Positions 47,415 to 56,988 of a stretch of 64,000 bases of DNA are shown here, piece after piece. The position numbers and the translations under genes are program-made. How positions within the stretch are numbered: the stretch's first letter is position 1; each line of letters opens with the position of its first letter. The stretch lies in sequence record KU521356.1; one strand, given 5' to 3'. A model generated the notes under the pieces. That model worked only from the letters and a program-made list of their open reading frames with translations, was not told the DNA's origin and did no database searches.

Positions 47415-47443
47415 AAAATAGTAAAAGAAATACACTATTCTAT

Positions 47444-47534
47444 GTAGTTCCTTTACGATTGCTCTTTTATCTTAGTTTCAGTTTTGCTGAAGAAGTACCA
47501 ATGAGATACCCTCCCCTGATCGGGGAGGGTTTTT
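47444..47534 (+). ncRNA. Candidate sRNA A (about 90 nt)
   Basis: TATGTAG at 47441; ATCTTA/TGAGAT and TTCAG/CTGAA stems; terminator CCCTCCCC-tgatc-GGGGAGGG-TTTTT; no RBS-led ORF. Confidence 0.5.
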
Positions 47535-47555
47535 GACATCTAAGAGGAAAATATA

Positions 47556-47936
47556 ATGTGCAAACAACATCGTGTAGTATCTATGAAAGTTACATGCACG
47601 CAAGCTCGCTATCCGATCGGTCTGTGCGATCTCGGATTTGATAATGCTGCTGATGCTCGGCAATATCTATTAGATGTCGTTGAGTACAATATGGATCGTC
47701 TCCACCCGCAACATGCTAATACATTCCAGCTACAAAATCTACAAGACGGGTTCGTAGTATCCTACGATATCGAAAAAGATGGATCCGTTTATCTTCGGTT
47801 AACACTGGCGGCTGTAGCTTATCAATCAATCGATCTTGAGTTGGGGGTTACCGTTAAAGAAAATGAAGGGATCAGTGTTGTAATCAAAAATTGGATCAAT
47901 GGTGAGTATACTGCGGGGAACAAATACTTGCAGTAA
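47556..47936 (+). CDS. Hypothetical protein between two candidate sRNAs
   Basis: GAGGAA RBS. Confidence 0.75.
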   Translation: MCKQHRVVSMKVTCTQARYPIGLCDLGFDNAADARQYLLDVVEYNMDRLHPQHANTFQLQNLQDGFVVSYDIEKDGSVYLRLTLAAVAYQSIDLELGVTVKENEGISVVIKNWINGEYTAGNKYLQ

Positions 47937-47944
47937 TACCATAT

Positions 47945-48067
47945 GTAAAGAATACCCAAATCGGGATCTCCCGGACTATCTCCCTTCAGCGTTCCCGTCC
48001 GCAAATGAAGGTGCCGCCGAGATCCCACCTATTGATAATGCCCTCCCTTCGGGGAGGGCATTATTTC
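47945..48067 (+). ncRNA. Candidate structured RNA B (about 120 nt, possible pseudoknot)
   Basis: TATGTA at 47942; GGGATCTC/GAGATCCC, CGGAC/GTCCG and CCTTCA/TGAAGG pairings; 40 of 64 core nt are G/C; UUCG terminator 48040-48059. Confidence 0.6.
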
Positions 48068-48102
48068 GCTTAAGCCTATTTATTTTATTATAAGGAGTGA
48101 AA

Positions 48103-48834
48103 ATGACATATATCGTAAATGATGGTAAAGTCATGATTGCAGACTGCCTATTAATTGAGCGGAATAATGCAACTGATAGCATTGGGCGACTTCCAGTATT
48201 AGATAACGGTTATATTGATCTAACTGCTAAAGCTGAAGGTGTAGATGTATATTACAATGATTGCCACAAGATAATTTTTCATCCGACAGTTACTTGGCAA
48301 GGTAAACGTGTTAAAACTATGGCTTTTGCTGGAACTATAGATAATGTTTATGATCTATTGAATGCCCTTACCGCAGGTGTTGATTTAGCTGATTGGTTTA
48401 AAGTTGAAGTAAATATCTTGCCAGTCATAGAACGCAGGTTGTTTAATGGTAATACTTCTATGATGTTCACTATGGAGAATGGTGACATATATACAGTTAT
48501 TCTTAAAGACATGGGTATCAACATCACCAAGAAAGATTGGGCTCATTTGGGTAGTGGTGTAGATGCAGTTAATAGTGTACTTGAGTTTATCCCTAATTGT
48601 AATGATAATGGATCAACCAAACTAACTGCACTTGAAGCATTTGCTATTGCATGTGCACATACTACTACTGTAAGTCGTAAATTTGATTATTACATCCATG
48701 CTACAGGTGAGTACAAGCAAAATCAAGAACTATCAACTAAACAACTAAAATGGATACTAGCGCGCATTCAAAAGCGGATGGATCTTACCCGCATTTTCAA
48801 TGACCGCGAATATGCCAATAACATATGGGGTTGA
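48103..48834 (+). CDS. HslV/proteasome-beta-like Ntn peptidase
   Basis: AAGGAG RBS gives the start M-T-Y-I-V (Thr1 nucleophile); MIAD; HLGSG; LTALEAFAIAC helix. Confidence 0.65.
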   Translation: MTYIVNDGKVMIADCLLIERNNATDSIGRLPVLDNGYIDLTAKAEGVDVYYNDCHKIIFHPTVTWQGKRVKTMAFAGTIDNVYDLLNALTAGVDLADWFKVEVNILPVIERRLFNGNTSMMFTMENGDIYTVILKDMGINITKKDWAHLGSGVDAVNSVLEFIPNCNDNGSTKLTALEAFAIACAHTTTVSRKFDYYIHATGEYKQNQELSTKQLKWILARIQKRMDLTRIFNDREYANNIWG

Positions 48835-48839
48835 TTTGT

Positions 48840-49355
48840 ATGAGTAATTCTAATATGGATATGCTATATTACACTAATGTAAATTGGGAGCAATATTTTC
48901 ATCATGTGAAACAACGTGCAGATGATACTGTTAAAGTAATGTATAAACCTGAATATGAAGATCTTATTGATGAAGCATGTAGGCCATTAATTAAATGGTT
49001 TAATCAATTTATCAATGTTGCAACTATTTATTGCTGTTCAGGCCATGTTGATGAAGAAACTGGTGGTAGCCCTGGATACATTAGTCTTTTATTTAAAGAT
49101 ACCAATGCAGAGAATTCTGCAATGCGTTTATTGCGTGAAGCAATGTGTAAGGGGCGTGAGTGTAAGATCCCATTCGAAATTGAACTGGGGGCTTATTTCG
49201 GGCATCTACATGAGACCATTGATCAGAATCACTGGGTCGCCAATCTAGTCATCCGCACCAATAGCTACAAACGTAAAAATACGTATGATCGCTATTGGCA
49301 TCGTCTTTACAATATCATAACAACATGTAATACTGAGGGTTTATACACCGTCTAA
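48840..49355 (+). CDS. TYW3-like protein
   Basis: IDEACRPLIKWFN...ATIYCCSGH...GYISL motif. Confidence 0.55.
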   Translation: MSNSNMDMLYYTNVNWEQYFHHVKQRADDTVKVMYKPEYEDLIDEACRPLIKWFNQFINVATIYCCSGHVDEETGGSPGYISLLFKDTNAENSAMRLLREAMCKGRECKIPFEIELGAYFGHLHETIDQNHWVANLVIRTNSYKRKNTYDRYWHRLYNIITTCNTEGLYTV

Positions 49356-51493: not shown

Positions 51494-51570
51494 TGGTGCC
51501 GCCACTCCGAATCGAACGGAGGACCTACGCATTACAAGTGCGTTGCTCTACCTAGCTGAGCTATAGCGGC
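51494..51570 (-). tRNA. tRNA-Thr(UGU)
   Basis: Full cloverleaf, ACGCA-CTTGTAA-TGCGT anticodon arm, TTCGA T-loop, encoded CCA. Confidence 0.97.
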
Positions 51571-51629
51571 GGAATCTTCTACATATAGTGTATATGAAAG
51601 TATTATTTTATTATAATAAATAGAGTTAT

Positions 51630-51660
51630 ATTCAAACATATTTAAACAGTATATTATTAA
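51630..51660 (+). promoter_or_regulatory. Early-type promoter divergent from tRNA-Thr
   Basis: TTCAAACATATTTAAACAGTATATTA shared with the 21.2 kb promoter. Confidence 0.7.
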
Positions 51661-51713
51661 CTTGATATTACTAAATGTAATATTTTCTATTAATTGTAAA
51701 TAGGATACTAAAT

Positions 51714-51851
51714 ATGAATATTGATCCAAAAACTTTTGGTATTATTGTTAGCGCCACTATTGGCACCGTAGGTGCTCTTATTCTTACGTATGGTATCGTG
51801 AGAGCAGTGCGTGGAAATAATAAACCTGATGTAAAAGATGTAGCAGAGTAA
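51714..51851 (+). CDS. 45-aa single-pass membrane peptide
   Basis: AGGA RBS; MNIDPKTFGIIVSATIGTVGALILTYGIVRAVRGNNKPDVKDVAE; own promoter and terminator. Confidence 0.75.
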   Translation: MNIDPKTFGIIVSATIGTVGALILTYGIVRAVRGNNKPDVKDVAE

Positions 51852-51909
51852 GATAACATAGAGCTAGCCCATTAGGGGCTAGCTCTTATATTTATTTTTT
51901 TTATTTGTT

Positions 51910-52536
51910 TTAACTTGGGGTACTATAATAAATAAATTTAGTTAATTCGGCTTCTTGCTCTTTGATTATATTATTTTTTGTTTGCTTAACATTAATATAA
52001 GATTCAATAGATAGCCAACGCTGATCATATTCGGCTAAGTCATTGAATTCAATTTTCTCGAATCGCCATGACTGAACAGTGGTTCTAATCAGATTACCTG
52101 ATTTATTAACAATATAACCTTGCATTGTCTCAAAAAAGTCATCTGCTTTACTAATAACAATAATTAGATATACATCATCTGTGTTTTTAGTATGCATTGA
52201 TTTTAATTTATAGACACGTGGGTTAAAAGAATCAATATCTTTATAATGTTCTTTGATTTCTAGAACAGCATCAATCATCATCTTGGCGCTATTTTGAATA
52301 CCGTTATTAAGTAGATATTCATTAAGTTCTTTTAATGAGTCATCACTCAATGATGCTTCGATATGTTCTTCACTTATAGGGTAGTGATAAACTAATTTAT
52401 TAATAGCTGAATTAACAACATTTAGTTTATCAACATCATAAACTTCTAATGTTTGCTTGCCAACTTTTATTTTTAATCCTTTATTTGAATCATTAATAAA
52501 GTTGTCTAGATCTACTTCAGTAAAATGAAAAGCCAT
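51910..52536 (-). CDS. Hypothetical protein
   Basis: AAGGTG RBS before MAFHF. Confidence 0.75.
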   Translation of the reverse strand: MAFHFTEVDLDNFINDSNKGLKIKVGKQTLEVYDVDKLNVVNSAINKLVYHYPISEEHIEASLSDDSLKELNEYLLNNGIQNSAKMMIDAVLEIKEHYKDIDSFNPRVYKLKSMHTKNTDDVYLIIVISKADDFFETMQGYIVNKSGNLIRTTVQSWRFEKIEFNDLAEYDQRWLSIESYINVKQTKNNIIKEQEAELTKFIYYSTPS

Positions 52537-52700
52537 TTTAATCACCTTTATGTTTTCCGTAGTGAAGTGAATAAACACACACCCGGTTTCTGGTTAGGAT
52601 AAAGTATGGTTAATCCATACATAATAAAATACGCAAGAGTATTAAATTAAAAAAACTAATATAACCTGATAAAAACCCTCCCATAATGGGAGGGTTATAA

Positions 52701-53271
52701 TTAGCTTTTAAGAACAGGTTTTAATATTAGATAAATATAGCAGTTAGCAGTAACTGTGGTTTCAACTACTTTACCATCACTATCGATTGCTAAAAGATTA
52801 GATGGATTATTAGTGGATACAGTTGATGATAGTATTTTATACGAATCTGCTAATCGGATACTAATTAAAGGGCGTTGAGTACGTTTAACTCGACTACAGA
52901 AGAATGTTAAAAGGTATTCAGTACACTCTTCTATAGTAGGTATACTAACCTCCCAAGTAACATCCTGCATTTCGATATTACGACCTTGTTGAACAGGGCC
53001 TCCTAAAGCAGTTATCATTGCACTTGGTAACTTATCAGTCATGTCACCGGAAGACGCCATTAAACCAGCTTGATATATAGTTACAGCACTAACTAAATAT
53101 ATTGACGCTGTATCGAAAAGAGCTATGTATTTATCGCCAATCCCATATGTTACTGGCACCGCATCTAAATCGGCAAACTTAATAGGTTTACCAGGAGTAG
53201 CCGCAATTAATGAATGGGTTGGTTTATTTTCTGGAACATATGTTTTAGTTAAATGACATACACAAAGCCAT
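52701..53271 (-). pseudogene. Gene probably split by a 1-nt frameshift near its start
   Basis: ATG 53271 gives MALCMSFN*; removing one T yields MACVCHLTKTYVPENK... in frame with the 52701..53159 ORF. Confidence 0.45.
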
Positions 53272-53380
53272 TTTTATGACTTCGCGTATGCGTGGCACGT
53301 ATCTATTAAGATGATACAACTTCATATCATAACAACATAAAGCCCTCCGTGATGGAGGGCTTTTATTTTATTTTTATACT

Positions 53381-53905
53381 TTAACTAAAACGAACTACAA
53401 TTACACTAGTACCAAAAGTATCAGCTACCCACTGATTAAATTCTTTATCAGTAATACCTCGTAAATTCAGATTATAAGATGCGTTATCTACAAGTATATA
53501 GCGGATATCTGAAAGTAAATTTTCATTAAAGTCTTTCTGGATCGTTGATAGTCCAGATTTATGGATATAGCTACGTAGTTTAAATGTAGTTAAATATGGA
53601 ATAATGTTATCTGGTGTTTTGGATAGTTTATCTTGAGCACCACGTCGAATTCTTTCGTCGGTGAATACTGCCAAACATTCACCAGGGTAGCGTTTTGAAA
53701 ATTCCATTAATGCTGTAGTACTACCAGATTGACGACCAATAAAAAACCCTACTGTTCTATGATCACGTATAGTGATATGACTGACATCATTAAGATGATA
53801 ATGCATCCCATACTTATTCCAATTCTCATTAGTTTTATATATCAATGCATCCAGGATAGCCTGGTAATCAACAATAGTTTTTACAAACTGATTTGTGTTA
53901 TTCAT
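53381..53905 (-). CDS. Degenerate P-loop (terminase/helicase-like) protein
   Basis: FFIGRQSGSTT (Lys replaced by Ser); YILVDNA Walker-B-like. Confidence 0.55.
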   Translation of the reverse strand: MNNTNQFVKTIVDYQAILDALIYKTNENWNKYGMHYHLNDVSHITIRDHRTVGFFIGRQSGSTTALMEFSKRYPGECLAVFTDERIRRGAQDKLSKTPDNIIPYLTTFKLRSYIHKSGLSTIQKDFNENLLSDIRYILVDNASYNLNLRGITDKEFNQWVADTFGTSVIVVRFS

Positions 53906-54049
53906 TATAGAAGTTCCTTTATTACAATGTAGTATATAACCTTTATTAAATTAGGTTATATACCGGCTATGGAAAAGGCCTCGTCACCTTCCCTTCACCT
54001 ATATTAAATATCAATAGTGGTTATAAAGAACGAGATACACTCATTGACA

Positions 54050-54162
54050 TAATATAGCCAGGGGTGGCAAACCCCTGGCATTCAGACACACTCTATAATT
54101 AAATCTACCACCGAGTGTATTTAGTGGATAGCTTTAGGATTATCTAGATAAAGTAATCCTAC
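54050..54162 (-). ncRNA. Candidate sRNA C (about 110 nt)
   Basis: TATGTAG at 54165-54159; AGGATTA/TAATCCT 5' hairpin; ACACTC/GAGTGT stem; GCCAGGGG/CCCCTGGC 3' hairpin. Confidence 0.4.
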
Positions 54163-54196
54163 ATAATATCATCGCACTAGTATTTTTATCTTTAGT

Positions 54197-55204
54197 TTAA
54201 TCGAGAACTAATGGGGCTACTTTAACTTGATATATACCAGTTAATAATTGGCTTTTCAACATATATGCTCCACCACCAACCGCCATTTTAGATCCACCTA
54301 CAATGATCATGCTATTATCCGGACCTTTAGCTATAGATGAAATATTAAGGAATCCGATACCTAGTTCAAATGGTTCAGCCCATTTCCGGCGCCTAATATT
54401 AAAACGTTGTGCAAACATTTTAGTTACACCGCCGACATCAACAGCGTTAAGGTAATTAAAATAGTCCCCATCTACATAACCATTACCTTGCCAGATTGTT
54501 CCTTTATCAGCAGGTATAATCATCCAAGGTGTTTGCTCCCATATTAAGGTAGTTGCATTATATCGATAAACTTCAAGATTAGGTATGTTCTTTGTATTAT
54601 CCCAACCACCAAAATGGTAAAAGTAACCATTATAAAAGAATAACTGTTGACCTGAACGAGCACCACCTGAATAGTCTTGCCCGCTAAGCCAAGACTTACT
54701 TGATGGTTTTAATCGCATTGCGTTTACGCCAATTGGGTTAACGCATAGAATAAGATCATTACCATCTGATGCGGAGGCTGTGCCCCAAAGTGGTACGGGA
54801 CCACTATATCGCTCAACCCTATTGCCTGTAGCTATATCAAAATGTTGTATAAAGTTAGATGTTCCCGTACCACCATTACCAGCCGAGTTCCATCCAGTAA
54901 TACCGCCATAAACAATAAAGTTATTCTTATGTAATGTCCCAAATCCTAAAGATACCCCTGGTAAGAATGTTCCAGAAGCAGTTGCACCTATATCGGCAAA
55001 TGGCGATATGGTAAAACGTCTGAACACAGTTGCAGCTGTTTGTCCTTCAGTATGATGACCAGATCCAACATACAGTGTATTTCCATCCACATATGACATT
55101 GTACCAGCTAACGCTACAGGTAGATCACCTAATTTAATAATTTCATTAAATCCAACCAAGGGTAACTCTTCGCCTATATCTGGCGATAATAGTAATTCAA
55201 ACAT
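54197..55204 (-). CDS. Kelch-repeat beta-propeller protein
   Basis: Repeats such as NFIVYGG, GYFYHFGG, SMIIVGG with Trp at regular spacing. Confidence 0.75.
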   Translation of the reverse strand: MFELLLSPDIGEELPLVGFNEIIKLGDLPVALAGTMSYVDGNTLYVGSGHHTEGQTAATVFRRFTISPFADIGATASGTFLPGVSLGFGTLHKNNFIVYGGITGWNSAGNGGTGTSNFIQHFDIATGNRVERYSGPVPLWGTASASDGNDLILCVNPIGVNAMRLKPSSKSWLSGQDYSGGARSGQQLFFYNGYFYHFGGWDNTKNIPNLEVYRYNATTLIWEQTPWMIIPADKGTIWQGNGYVDGDYFNYLNAVDVGGVTKMFAQRFNIRRRKWAEPFELGIGFLNISSIAKGPDNSMIIVGGSKMAVGGGAYMLKSQLLTGIYQVKVAPLVLD

Positions 55205-55288
55205 GAGTGTGCTCTCAAGTAAATCATTTTAATTCATAAGATAACCCATGGCAACATAAAAGAGTAGCCGAAGCTACTCTTTAGAATA

Positions 55289-55364
<76 letters not shown>

Positions 55365-55370
55365 ATTAAA

Positions 55371-55447
55371 TGGCGCGCCCAAGGGGACTCGAACCCCTGA
55401 CCACCCGCGTGACAGGCGGGTATTCTAACCAACTGAACTATGAGCGC
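55371..55447 (-). tRNA. tRNA-Asp(GUC)
   Basis: Cloverleaf, CCCGC-CTGTCAC-GCGGG, encoded CCA. Confidence 0.97.
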
Positions 55448-55499
55448 AAACGTATGGACATGACTTCCTACATAGTATTACATAACCAGTAATATTTTA

Positions 55500-55847
55500 T
55501 TACGGGCGATCAGTCCAGTGCTTGAAATAGTTACCATCCTTGGGACGATCGTACTTAGCAAGAATATTTTTAAGTTCTTCGCCGGACAACTTAATACTAT
55601 CGCCTACTGGGCTATCCAGTTCAGGGCAAGGTTCAGTTTTACGTGTAATGATTAAATTATCAGTCCCATCTTTGAAGATAAAGATAAACTGCGTTTCATT
55701 AGCACTAATCTTTTTCTTAACGCAATGCTTTACTTCTGGATGTTTCTTGTGGATCGTTACAAAAGATTCAACAAGAGTTAGCTTTATAAACTCAGGGCTA
55801 ATAAATGTGAAATATACAGCGCTCTGCGTTGGGGTTAGATGATCCAT
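55500..55847 (-). CDS. Hypothetical protein
   Basis: GGAG RBS; lies within the tRNA cluster. Confidence 0.75.
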   Translation of the reverse strand: MDHLTPTQSAVYFTFISPEFIKLTLVESFVTIHKKHPEVKHCVKKKISANETQFIFIFKDGTDNLIITRKTEPCPELDSPVGDSIKLSGEELKNILAKYDRPKDGNYFKHWTDRP

Positions 55848-55849
55848 AT

Positions 55850-56155
55850 TTACTCCGTATGTTTGAGATAGGCTTTAACTGCTTTAAGACCTTTATTAAA
55901 GAACATAGCTTCAACATAAGTAATGTTACTTACATCCTCGCCGATAAGTTCCCATTTGATGCAACGTGTAACAGCGTTGATTGTAATATCTAATCCGTTT
56001 GGGAATAGGGTTACTTCATCGGTCAGGTGAATCCAATCGGGAGCCTTCGCTCCATTACGTAAACGGGGACTAAAAGTAAGATTATAAAGTGTTTGTAATG
56101 GTTGTCTCAATAGTTCTTTTTGTTCTTGATGTTCCATGTATTTTCCTAGAGACAT
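55850..56155 (-). CDS. Hypothetical protein
   Basis: 101-aa ORF; start may be the internal Met of MEHQ. Confidence 0.7.
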   Translation of the reverse strand: MSLGKYMEHQEQKELLRQPLQTLYNLTFSPRLRNGAKAPDWIHLTDEVTLFPNGLDITINAVTRCIKWELIGEDVSNITYVEAMFFNKGLKAVKAYLKHTE

Positions 56156-56367
56156 TTAAAAATATAAATAGAATGGTTATCTCTTTCGGTTATCTTTAGA
56201 GTATTCTCATTTCGAATAACTTCAAGAGACTTGTATTTATGTTCCAGAATATCCAGATGAGAAATACACTGTTCCCTATTTTCAAATAGGATATTACTTT
56301 CATTAGTCGAAATGAAACCAAATAATCCAACTTTGATAGATAATACCAACATTATTACTGTATTCAT
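56146..56367 (-). CDS. Small exported/membrane protein with F-x5-C...C pattern
   Basis: GAGGA RBS; MNTVIMLVLSI, FENREQC, C-terminal IFKCL. Confidence 0.7.
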   Translation of the reverse strand: MNTVIMLVLSIKVGLFGFISTNESNILFENREQCISHLDILEHKYKSLEVIRNENTLKITERDNHSIYIFKCL

Positions 56368-56419
56368 GTTTTCCTCAATGAGACAGTATAAAACCTCCCC
56401 CAAGTGGGAGGCTAGTATA

Positions 56420-56496
56420 TGGTGGGCCCAGCAGGACTTGAACCTGCGACCAAGCGATTATGAGTCGCCTGCTCTAACCAACTGAGCTATAGGCCC
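56420..56496 (-). tRNA. tRNA with CAU anticodon, most likely tRNA-Ile2
   Basis: Cloverleaf; GGCGACTCATAATCGCTTGGTCGC matches the bacterial ileX-type arm; paired G1-C72; encoded CCA. Confidence 0.9.
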
Positions 56497-56503
56497 TTTT
56501 TAT

Positions 56504-56797
56504 TTATTCTGGTAAGAATGTTCCATCTTTTTGACGGACTAATACACCTGACCATTTGAATGTATTTGTATCACTAGCAGGGCACTCTCTAATTACATTG
56601 GTTCTAAATGTGCCATGTGGATAGGTTACAGTGAATGTAATATGGTTATTACAAACATGTAATACAGAAGACTTTGCTTCTGTTAGATAGTGTAAGCCTT
56701 GAGCTAATTGAATATTAGTTAATTCAGGGTCACTAAGAATAGCGTAAAGAGCTGTTCCTATAATTTGATGTTCCCATGATATCCATTTATTATCCAT
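56504..56797 (-). CDS. Hypothetical protein
   Basis: AGGT/AGGA RBS. Confidence 0.7.
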   Translation of the reverse strand: MDNKWISWEHQIIGTALYAILSDPELTNIQLAQGLHYLTEAKSSVLHVCNNHITFTVTYPHGTFRTNVIRECPASDTNTFKWSGVLVRQKDGTFLPE

Positions 56798-56818
56798 CCT
56801 ATTTACCTATTATTAAAA

Positions 56819-56894
56819 TGGTCGGAGTGGGGAGACTCGAACTCCCGACATCCTGCTCCCAAAGCAGGCGCGCTACCAACTGCGCTACACTCCG
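56819..56894 (-). tRNA. tRNA-Pro(UGG)
   Basis: Cloverleaf, CCTGC-TTTGGGA-GCAGG, encoded CCA. Confidence 0.97.
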
Positions 56895-56903
56895 TATTTA
56901 AAT

Positions 56904-56988
56904 TGGTGCCCGAAGTCGGATTCGAACCGACAAGACCGTAGCCGGAAGATTTTAAGTCTTCTGTGTTTACCAATTTCACCATTCGGGC
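56904..56988 (-). tRNA. tRNA-Leu(UAA)
   Basis: Class II cloverleaf with long variable arm, GAAGA-CTTAAAA-TCTTC, encoded CCA. Confidence 0.97.

Follow-up and report, generated by a model that had tools for sequence, protein, structure and literature searches.

In this study, we followed up one small element in a stretch of 64,000 nucleotides (nt) from sequence record KU521356.1, called the window below and numbered from its first letter. The element lies in a 166-nt spacer between two + strand genes, the homologues of PHIKZ288 (47556-47936) and PHIKZ289 (48103-48834), to neither of which a function is assigned, and a first-pass annotation made from the letters alone had described it as a GC-rich structured RNA. 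Over the surrounding 4 kb, identity is 100% with Pseudomonas phage KTN4 (KU521356, genus Phikzvirus) and 98-99% with phiKZ and some 40 further isolates; positions convert as window = KTN4 - 215593 and phiKZ = window + 215226. We favour the reading that 47946-48066 (+) specifies a conserved structured non-coding RNA (ncRNA) that acts in trans by binding a factor, and as a whole we give this reading a probability of about 0.5. There is very little doubt that the element is a real, conserved structured ncRNA with a nested fold; the trans-acting, factor-binding mode is put forward tentatively, at somewhat less than an even chance.

The published transcript

The transcriptome of phiKZ has been charted by ONT-cappable-seq, with supplementary tables (Putzeys et al. 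2024, microLife, PMC10914365; bioRxiv 10.1101/2023.10.13.562163). Table S3 of that work lists promoter P130, classed as 'middle promoter', with its transcription start site (TSS) at 263172(+) and a -50 to +1 sequence finishing in CCATATGT, and Table S4 lists terminator T119, classed as 'intrinsic', with its transcription termination site (TTS) at 263292. P130 and T119 delimit transcription unit TU198, 120 nt long with no annotated feature inside, and Table S7 gives 263172-263292 as a '5'UTR-derived' (UTR, untranslated region) ncRNA candidate of PHIKZ289 with an RNAfold energy of -46.6 kcal/mol; the entry carries no structure, function or conservation. As the published interval converts to window 47946-48066, the TATGTA motif can be recognised as the promoter/TSS motif and the UUCG hairpin as the mapped 3' end. 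The independent ncRNA proposed by the first-pass annotation is thereby borne out, with a published TSS at TATG(T), a TTS at the hairpin and a 120-nt unit without a gene. The published screen discarded candidates containing an open reading frame (ORF) of at least 10 aa preceded by a Shine-Dalgarno (SD) sequence (PMC10914365); in the RNA the TSS and TTS are less than 250 nt apart, a gene follows, and no such ORF is present.

T119 is also the 3' end of PHIKZ287/288 mRNAs (TU195, TU197), and the longest read from the P130 TSS extends to 264292, spanning PHIKZ289 (Putzeys, PMC10914365). No TSS is reported from T119 to the PHIKZ289 start codon, the next promoter, P131, being at 264056 (PMC10914365), and therefore PHIKZ289 depends on read-through of T119. 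Such units were read by the authors as conditional premature termination and as possible regulatory RNAs. The 'conserved giant-phage sRNA' (small RNA; 201phi2-1 sRNA005 / phiKZ sRNAgp182) described in the 201phi2-1 paper maps elsewhere, upstream of gp182. The parts covered of the supplements to the Grad-seq, dRNA-seq and 201phi2-1 papers hold no entry for the RNA locus, and no interactome data on the RNA were found in the papers and supplements searched.

A second published ncRNA candidate lies upstream of PHIKZ288 (phiKZ 262671-262760, P129 to T118, 89 nt, corresponding to window 47445-47534) and finishes in a hairpin at about 47507-47535. The 141-nt spacer holding it (47415-47555) is 100% identical between KTN4 and U1B, while the adjoining gp288 is 81.7% identical.

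Fold, conservation and covariation of the core

A direct check of the sequence placed every string of the first-pass annotation where it had been reported: TATGTA at 47942-47947, the outer stem GGGATCTC (47963-70) with GAGATCCC (48019-26), CCTTCA (47983-88) able to pair with TGAAGG (48006-11), a nested alternative GCG (47989-91) with CGC (48000-02), CGGAC (47972-76) able to pair in KTN4 with GTCCG (47997-48001) and crossed by the CCTTCA stem, and a TTCG-loop hairpin at 48034-48065. The 64-nt core (47963-48026) holds exactly 40 G+C in a window of 35.2% G+C, and at least 40 G+C per 64 nt is reached in only three places of the 64 kb, namely the RNA core and two tRNA clusters. The + strand RNA of 47937-48075 has a minimum free energy (MFE) of -50.6 kcal/mol against -33.4 +/- 4.1 for shuffled sequences (z = -4.15), and since none of 200 shuffles was as stable, the structured feature is real and beyond chance. 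Its MFE fold is nested: inside the 8-bp outer stem lie CGG/CCG and CCUUCA/UGAAGG, the latter prolonged by GCG/CGC, and a terminator hairpin of 14 bp with a UUCG loop follows. The parts of the transcription unit, all on the + strand, are as follows.

47897..47946, +: P130 region (-50 to +1), reaching into the 3' end of the PHIKZ288 homologue; TATG(T) at 47942-47946, TSS at about 47946 (Table S3)
47946..47962, +: unpaired 5' leader; the Table S7 sequence begins taaagaatacccaaatc; unpaired in the MFE fold
47963..47970, +: P1 5' strand GGGAUCUC; partner 48019-48026; compensatory changes at 7 of 8 pairs over 15 homologues
47972..47974, +: P2 5' strand CGG; partner 48014-48016 (CCG); covaries
47975..47982, +: internal loop, 5' side ACUAUCUC; AUCUC at 47978-47982 invariant, unpaired in most homologues' own MFE folds
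47983..47988, +: P3a 5' strand CCUUCA; partner 48006-48011; covaries
47989..47991, +: P3b 5' strand GCG; partner 48000-48002 (CGC); 4 of 4 model pairs compensatory
47992..47999, +: apical loop UUCCCGUC; CCCGUC invariant in 15 of 15 homologues
48000..48002, +: P3b 3' strand CGC; MFE fold and covariation
48003..48005, +: 3' bulge AAA between P3b and P3a; 0-12 nt in relatives
48006..48011, +: P3a 3' strand UGAAGG; MFE fold and covariation
48012..48013, +: internal loop, 3' side UG, within the conserved GGUGCC block; kept in 15 of 16 homologues, absent from the uncultivated virus genome (UViG) L458
48014..48016, +: P2 3' strand CCG; MFE fold and covariation
48019..48026, +: P1 3' strand GAGAUCCC; MFE fold and covariation
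48027..48033, +: conserved single-stranded tail or linker ACCUAUU; NCCU in most homologues, ACUU in PhiPA3
48034..48066, +: intrinsic terminator T119, a 14-bp hairpin with UUCG loop, then UUAUUU; MFE fold, terminator scan and Table S4; 3' end at about 48066
48091..48105, +: SD AAGGAG and ATG of the PHIKZ289 homologue (KTN4_349, 48103-48834); annotation

The 78-nt core is present in a single copy per genome and is 100% identical across 40 phiKZ-type genomes. Nucleotide-level constraint on the core is strong. In the U1B/T2P/U5 clade, leader and core differ from KTN4 at 3 of 90 positions (87 the same), and both core substitutions hit unpaired positions; the same DNA comparison gives 81.7% identity for gp288, 65% for the terminator region, 78.7% for gp289 (79% as protein) and 75% for gp290. 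Upstream of the gp289 homologues in RVTF4 and Psa21 the element was found with the conserved blocks ATCTCCC, CCCGTC, GGTGCC and CCACCTATT, with other helix sequences and with its own terminator, and a pattern scan of IMG/VR added four further sequence variants from large viral contigs. A covariance model (R1) built from seven sequences then gave exactly one + strand copy each in D6, PA1C, HPP-Temi, PhiPA3, Phabio, Viktualia, 201phi2-1 and the divergent contigs L020 and L067 (L numbers are our handles for the records compared), all at the same genomic position downstream of gp287/gp287.1 homologues. Core homologues are thus present in at least eight other Pseudomonas jumbo phage lineages (PhiPA3, PA1C/HPP-Temi, 201phi2-1, Phabio, Psa21, D6, RVTF4, Viktualia and uncultured contigs), and all members found belong to Pseudomonas phages or unassigned viral contigs. 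A scan of metagenome and genome collections for ATCTCCC..CCCGTC..GGTGCC left, among the matches listed and after a crude flank-pairing filter, only GC-rich, chance-like ones. In 12 homologues the motif TAT(A/G)T(A/G) follows GTAAT, 8-30 nt upstream of P1.

The helices of these homologues covary. A structure-blind MAFFT alignment of seven sequences showed compensatory changes at 12 of 21 pairs with 89% of cells paired (slid controls 36-45%), and the model-based alignment of 15 sequences showed them at 18 of 21 with 93.6% of cells paired (slid controls 38-47%; 0 of 500 shuffles reached the observed values), counts that lean towards structure as this alignment was fitted to the model. P1 occurs as GGGAUCUC/GAGAUCCC, GGAGUGCA/UGCACUCC, GGAAUUC/GAAUUCC and GAGGUUAC/GUGGCCUC; P2 as CGG/CCG, GUGG/CCAC, GUAG/CUAC, AAGGG/CCCUU and CAAAG/CUUUG; P3a, beyond CCUUCA/UGAAGG, as CCAGCU/AGCUGG, CCAAC/GUUGG and UCUAACC/GGUUAGA; and P3b as GCG/CGC, GCU/AGC, UACC/GGUA, CACC/GGUG and CAAG/CUUG. 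P3a opens at 47983 with C in most homologues but with U in 201phi2-1 and Viktualia. Covariation extends to the conserved blocks themselves, AUCUCUC pairing with AGAUGCC in these two phages where elsewhere AUCUCCC and GGUGCC are found. Folded singly, about 12 of the 15 homologues adopt the same architecture as their MFE fold. Two unpaired motifs never vary, AUCUC in the internal loop (5' side) and CCCGUC in the apical loop, while the NCCU that follows P1 is held less strictly. The + strand is indicated as the RNA strand by the TSS and TTS of the published map, by the orientation of the terminator T-tract and by the excess of G.U over A.C cells in the helices (8 vs 2). Conservation and compensatory change in relatives, by which the first-pass annotation had proposed that its RNA be judged, were both found, as was the 120-nt unit in the literature, and none of the three refutations that the annotation had named told against the RNA.

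Taken together, the sequence comparison indicates that the core folds as a nested, unbranched and irregular rod, P1-P2-internal loop-P3a-P3b-apical loop, and not as a pseudoknot; its dimensions are P1 8 bp, P2 3 bp, ACUAUCUC opposite UG, P3a 6 bp, P3b 3 bp and an 8-nt loop UUCCCGUC. The first-pass annotation had left a choice between an H-type pseudoknot, in which CGGAC/GUCCG crosses CCUUCA/UGAAGG, and a switch to the nested GCG/CGC alternative, with a ribozyme among the possible roles. The nested half of that choice and the CCUUCA/UGAAGG stem (P3a) stood, as both covary, and so does the CGG/CCG helix (P2), which the annotation had not seen; the CGGAC/GUCCG stem did not stand. Both crossing stems can be drawn in the phiKZ/KTN4 sequence, and the inner two CGGAC/GUCCG pairs (G-C, A-U) use invariant bases, which would allow a tertiary contact. 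Counted over 15 homologues, however, this stem shows 0 compensatory changes and a paired fraction of 65.5%, below the shuffled mean of 68.1%; of its outer two pairs, one is disrupted in 5 and the other in 8 of 11 homologues, and its strands are claimed by covarying helices, CGGAC by P2 and the 3' end of GUCCG by P3b. No other crossing helix was found in the homologue comparison, and no ribozyme family in Rfam 15 matches. We therefore regard the pseudoknot or switch as highly improbable, and a ribozyme or ligand-switch role for the RNA as pure speculation.

The first-pass annotation could match the RNA to no known family, which is correct for Rfam 15, although the transcript itself was already catalogued in the literature. 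At the gathering threshold the whole window returned 6 tRNAs only; region 47800-48200 at E<=10 returned terminator-like partial matches only, with 13-19 bits vs cut-offs of 41-60; and the loci of the long form described below returned nothing at the RNA at E<=1. The six tRNA genes (Thr, Asn, Asp, Met, Pro, Leu; 51494-56988) lie 3.5-9 kb downstream on the - strand, opposite to the RNA, and ARAGORN found in the window these six only and none at the element. A likeness to 5S rRNA or the 16S rRNA 3' end, noted by eye, was rejected, being confined to the phiKZ sequence and not shared by the family.

The long form and the downstream genes

In PhiPA3, PA1C/HPP-Temi, 201phi2-1, Viktualia, L067, L419, L458 and L471, the core (domain 1) is not directly followed by a terminator but by about 300 nt more of conserved RNA, whose conserved features include a long-range helix CUUUCGG...CCGAAG(C) around covarying hairpins and the blocks GAAGUUA, CGACUGACAAAGUGAUAC and CUGGCCAGCAC; after it come a strong terminator and, 15-25 nt on, the AAGGAG-ATG of the next gene. 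The whole multi-helix RNA measures 370-420 nt in PA1C and the 201phi2-1 group, with the element as its 5' domain. RNAalifold on six members of the 201phi2-1 group gave 95 pairs, 29 of them compensatory, including an extra 5' hairpin. A second model (R2), built from the 3' domain of this group, recovered PA1C at the expected place (E about 0.02), and the extensions of PhiPA3, L020 and KEN49 were not detected in the R2 search; those of L020 and KEN49 are similar to the long form in length. The short form, domain 1 plus terminator, is found in phiKZ, the U1B clade, RVTF4, Psa21, D6, Phabio and several contigs, and as it keeps nothing else of the long RNA, domain 1 is a module that persists alone. 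We consider it quite probable that the core is domain 1 of a longer RNA family.

Among phiKZ-type records, only KEN49 (L005, PP456877), otherwise about 99% identical to phiKZ, has an extension, of about 280 nt (about 598-925) between core and terminator, corresponding to an insertion between window 48033 and 48040. BLAST of the insert gave no match outside the KEN49 record; a few short blocks of it align with the long form, and it may be a retained long form. In 201phi2-1 the annotated gp425 start (L403 6499-6765) lies inside the long-form RNA, upstream of its terminator, and an in-frame ATG at about 6568 after AAGGAG fits the homologous 64-aa proteins better. In Viktualia, CDS0139 (L405 6381-6662) overlaps domain 1.

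The gene order of the whole neighbourhood is kept across the family phages, and the first ORF after the RNA represents one of three or more unrelated families (gp289; a small membrane protein; a 64-aa protein). A gp289-family gene comes first in phiKZ and U1B and, distantly related, in PhiPA3 and PA1C. In a second set, a membrane protein of 56-78 aa precedes gp289: sequence matches identify it in RVTF4, Psa21 and L101, whereas in D6 and L048, which gave none in tblastn, only position and ORF size do so. L054 has the membrane protein but lacks gp289. The 64-aa protein comes first in 201phi2-1, Phabio and L067.

The small hydrophobic ORF between the RNA terminator and the next gene in RVTF4, Psa21, L054 and L101 is absent from phiKZ. 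The Psa21, L054 and L101 copies share LExRYxLHFDM..W.YW, and in D6 an annotated 72-aa ORF without sequence match to the others takes this position. The set is as follows.

L006 1271-1504: small hydrophobic ORF
L007 1334-1504: small hydrophobic ORF
L054 2015-2203, -: small hydrophobic ORF
L101 about 1210-1356, -: small hydrophobic ORF
L408 7156-7374: small ORF in this position

The PHIKZ289 homologue (48103-48834), which begins MTYIV and weakly matches an HslV-family peptidase PHROG (E = 5e-5), may have an N-terminal-threonine hydrolase fold. The PHIKZ290 homologue (48840-49355) has a sub-threshold match to TYW3 methyltransferase (16.8 bits vs a cut-off of 27).

A 160-nt query including the terminator matches 12-15 places per phiKZ-type genome. 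Since the core alone matches one place per record, the extra places probably come from a reused terminator hairpin, of the GCCCTCCC-TTCG-GGGAGGGC type, which is probably shared by many transcription-unit ends.

Function and relation to known RNAs

On the favoured reading, the phage's own RNA polymerase makes the RNA from P130, within the end of the PHIKZ288 gene, and T119 closes a primary transcript of about 120 nt, whose sequence doubles as the 3' UTR of PHIKZ287/288 mRNAs and as the 5' leader of the read-through PHIKZ289 mRNA. The covarying helices may serve as a rigid scaffold displaying the invariant C-rich AUCUC and CCCGUC to a conserved partner. We infer a scaffold and such a partner because conservation is as tight for helix lengths and loop sizes as for the loop sequences, and because domain 1 persists where the rest of the RNA has been lost and where the adjacent gene has changed. 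A phage or host protein or ribonucleoprotein (RNP) would be a likelier partner of the loop motifs than G-rich or Shine-Dalgarno sequences of mRNAs. Acting in trans, the short RNA would be a regulator or a decoy, and the throttling of PHIKZ289 transcription at T119 would be a side effect. Its own TSS, its Rho-independent terminator and the conserved unpaired AUCUC and CCCGUC are features expected of a trans-acting sRNA.

Several points weigh against this reading. The larger of the two alignments behind the fold leans towards structure, as said above. In the transcriptome catalogue the RNA is classed as 5'UTR-derived, with read-through into PHIKZ289, and the validation column of Table S7 is empty for 263172-263292, with no northern blot listed (PMC10914365). 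Every homologue is followed, about 20-40 nt past the terminator, by a co-oriented gene with a good SD and apparently without its own promoter, and in most phages a gp289-family gene, together with a gp290.1 homologue, lies downstream. The extensions of KEN49 and L020 and the 3' part of PhiPA3 are putative relatives of the long form, R2 having detected none of them. Given the 5'UTR-derived class, the promoterless downstream gene and the association with gp289, a cis-acting leader fits equally well.

Such a leader, an attenuator or riboswitch-like element, is the strongest alternative and a serious though less probable one. Domain 1, or the long form, would sense a metabolite, an ion or a protein and so set termination at T119 against read-through, and the 120-nt RNA would be a mere terminated by-product. 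The layout suits it well: a conserved structured domain lies between TSS and ORF with an intrinsic terminator directly after it, and all homologues share the order of promoter, structured RNA, intrinsic terminator and SD-ATG. PHIKZ289 lacks a TSS of its own and is spanned by the longest P130 read, conditional premature termination is the class given by the transcriptome authors (PMC10914365), and invariant loop nucleotides between covarying stems are also what riboswitch aptamers display. Against it, a conserved pairing of domain 1 with the terminator was not found: in the one pairing type compared (domain 1 with the 3' half of the terminator, nine sequences), cognate duplexes averaged -9.6 vs -8.9 kcal/mol for non-cognate ones and the cognate ranked 2-5 of 9. 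In addition, the first downstream gene varies by clade and gp289 is missing in L054, no riboswitch in Rfam 15 matches, T119 is also the normal 3' end of PHIKZ288 mRNAs (TU195/197), and a multi-domain leader of 400 nt would be unusual. The lack of a conserved antiterminator among the pairs compared and the variation of the first downstream ORF speak against a simple leader.

A further possibility, which we hold a little less likely than the leader, is that domain 1 is the core of an undescribed multi-domain RNA class of about 400 nt, working as an RNP component or as a regulator of the phage's non-canonical RNA polymerase or of translation. This class might be specific to phiKZ-like nucleus-forming Pseudomonas phages and be put-like, 6S-like or a ligand sensor, and not an ordinary base-pairing sRNA or a passive leader.

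A processing or tRNA-like signal is improbable. It would make P1 and P2 an acceptor-like minihelix which, with NCC(U), is offered to RNase P, to 3' processing or to the CCA-adding enzyme, in line with a terminal helix of 7-8 bp stacked on P2 and a conserved ACCU, GCCU or CCCU after P1 (ACUU in PhiPA3). However, a tRNA or tRNA-like element was rejected, neither ARAGORN nor the Rfam tRNA model (RF00005) calling one and the fold being a rod and not a cloverleaf, and the 120-nt RNA was obtained as a primary (capped-enriched) transcript that retained its whole leader. In a variant of this idea, the RNA is a put-like element that makes the phage RNA polymerase read through terminators. The put RNAs of HK022 are promoter-proximal and lie upstream of terminators, which the position of our RNA just upstream of T119 resembles; in sequence and structure, however, it is unrelated to put, and the polymerase concerned is the non-virion RNA polymerase of phiKZ.

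Weakest is the view that ORF 47899-48093 (64 aa) is the functional product and the RNA structure incidental: the ORF is open in KTN4, phiKZ and U1B and is annotated by automated pipelines, but no SD precedes its ATG, its C-terminus is altered in U1B and truncated in KEN49, all three sense frames carry stops across the element in PhiPA3, Phabio and 201phi2-1, substitutions in the core fall as compensatory base pairs, and the published screen excluded candidates with SD-preceded ORFs (PMC10914365), so that we give it next to no weight. 'Hypothetical proteins' of 44-64 aa are annotated over the RNA (window 47899-48093; L004 463-657; L005 463-645 and 784-918), and a coding sequence (CDS) lies under it in the records of 6B, 9-Ps-8B, 9Ps-7B, 14Ps5-6, KEN19, KEN49, KEN51, AttikonH10, ANB1, PhiPizzaParty, Bobae and MKR2, the coordinates having been checked for 6B and KEN49 only; these are probably spurious ORF calls.

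With reference to known systems, the RNA belongs among phage-encoded, promoter-proximal structured small RNAs. It is one of 17 '5'UTR-derived ncRNA candidates' listed by Putzeys, with kin upstream of PHIKZ221, PHIKZ302, p40 and PHIKZ182, and like them it starts at a phage promoter and ends, as a short primary transcript, at an intrinsic terminator ahead of a gene; this study adds to the entry the covariation across genera and the long form. With terminating riboswitches and attenuators it shares the TSS, an aptamer-like fold with invariant loops, an intrinsic terminator, an SD-ATG and a gene dependent on read-through, and it differs from them in having no Rfam match, no conserved antiterminator found and downstream genes that are not uniform. 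Small RNAs with C-rich seeds, such as the Staphylococcus UCCC-motif RsaE and Hfq-type sRNAs, likewise have their own promoter, an unpaired CUCC or CCCG that could pair with G-rich or Shine-Dalgarno sequences, and an A/U-rich stretch before the terminator; unlike in these, helix lengths and loop sizes are more tightly kept here, and some relatives carry about 300 nt of extra structure. Like GOLLD and ROOL, the RNA is phage-encoded, multi-helix, supported by covariation and near a tRNA region, but it gave no covariance-model match and its long form, at about 400 nt, is smaller. The existence of the transcript was already known; the family, its covarying fold, its invariant motifs and the long form are in neither Rfam 15 nor the literature searched.

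Large RNAs supported by covariation but of unassigned function are rare, and unusual biochemistry has often emerged from them. The phiKZ-like phages form a nucleus-like compartment and rely on RNA polymerases of their own, and to our knowledge almost nothing is known of RNA-based regulation in them. What was an anonymous line in a supplementary table gains the status of an RNA family, suitable as an Rfam entry, which also corrects spurious ORF annotations in many phiKZ-type genomes. AUCUC, CCCGUC and the helix pairs offer precise mutational targets for phiKZ genetics, and with at least nine phage lineages, including six named genera, its compensated pairs, its invariant loop motifs and its long form, the family is clearly a candidate functional RNA that has a conserved partner.

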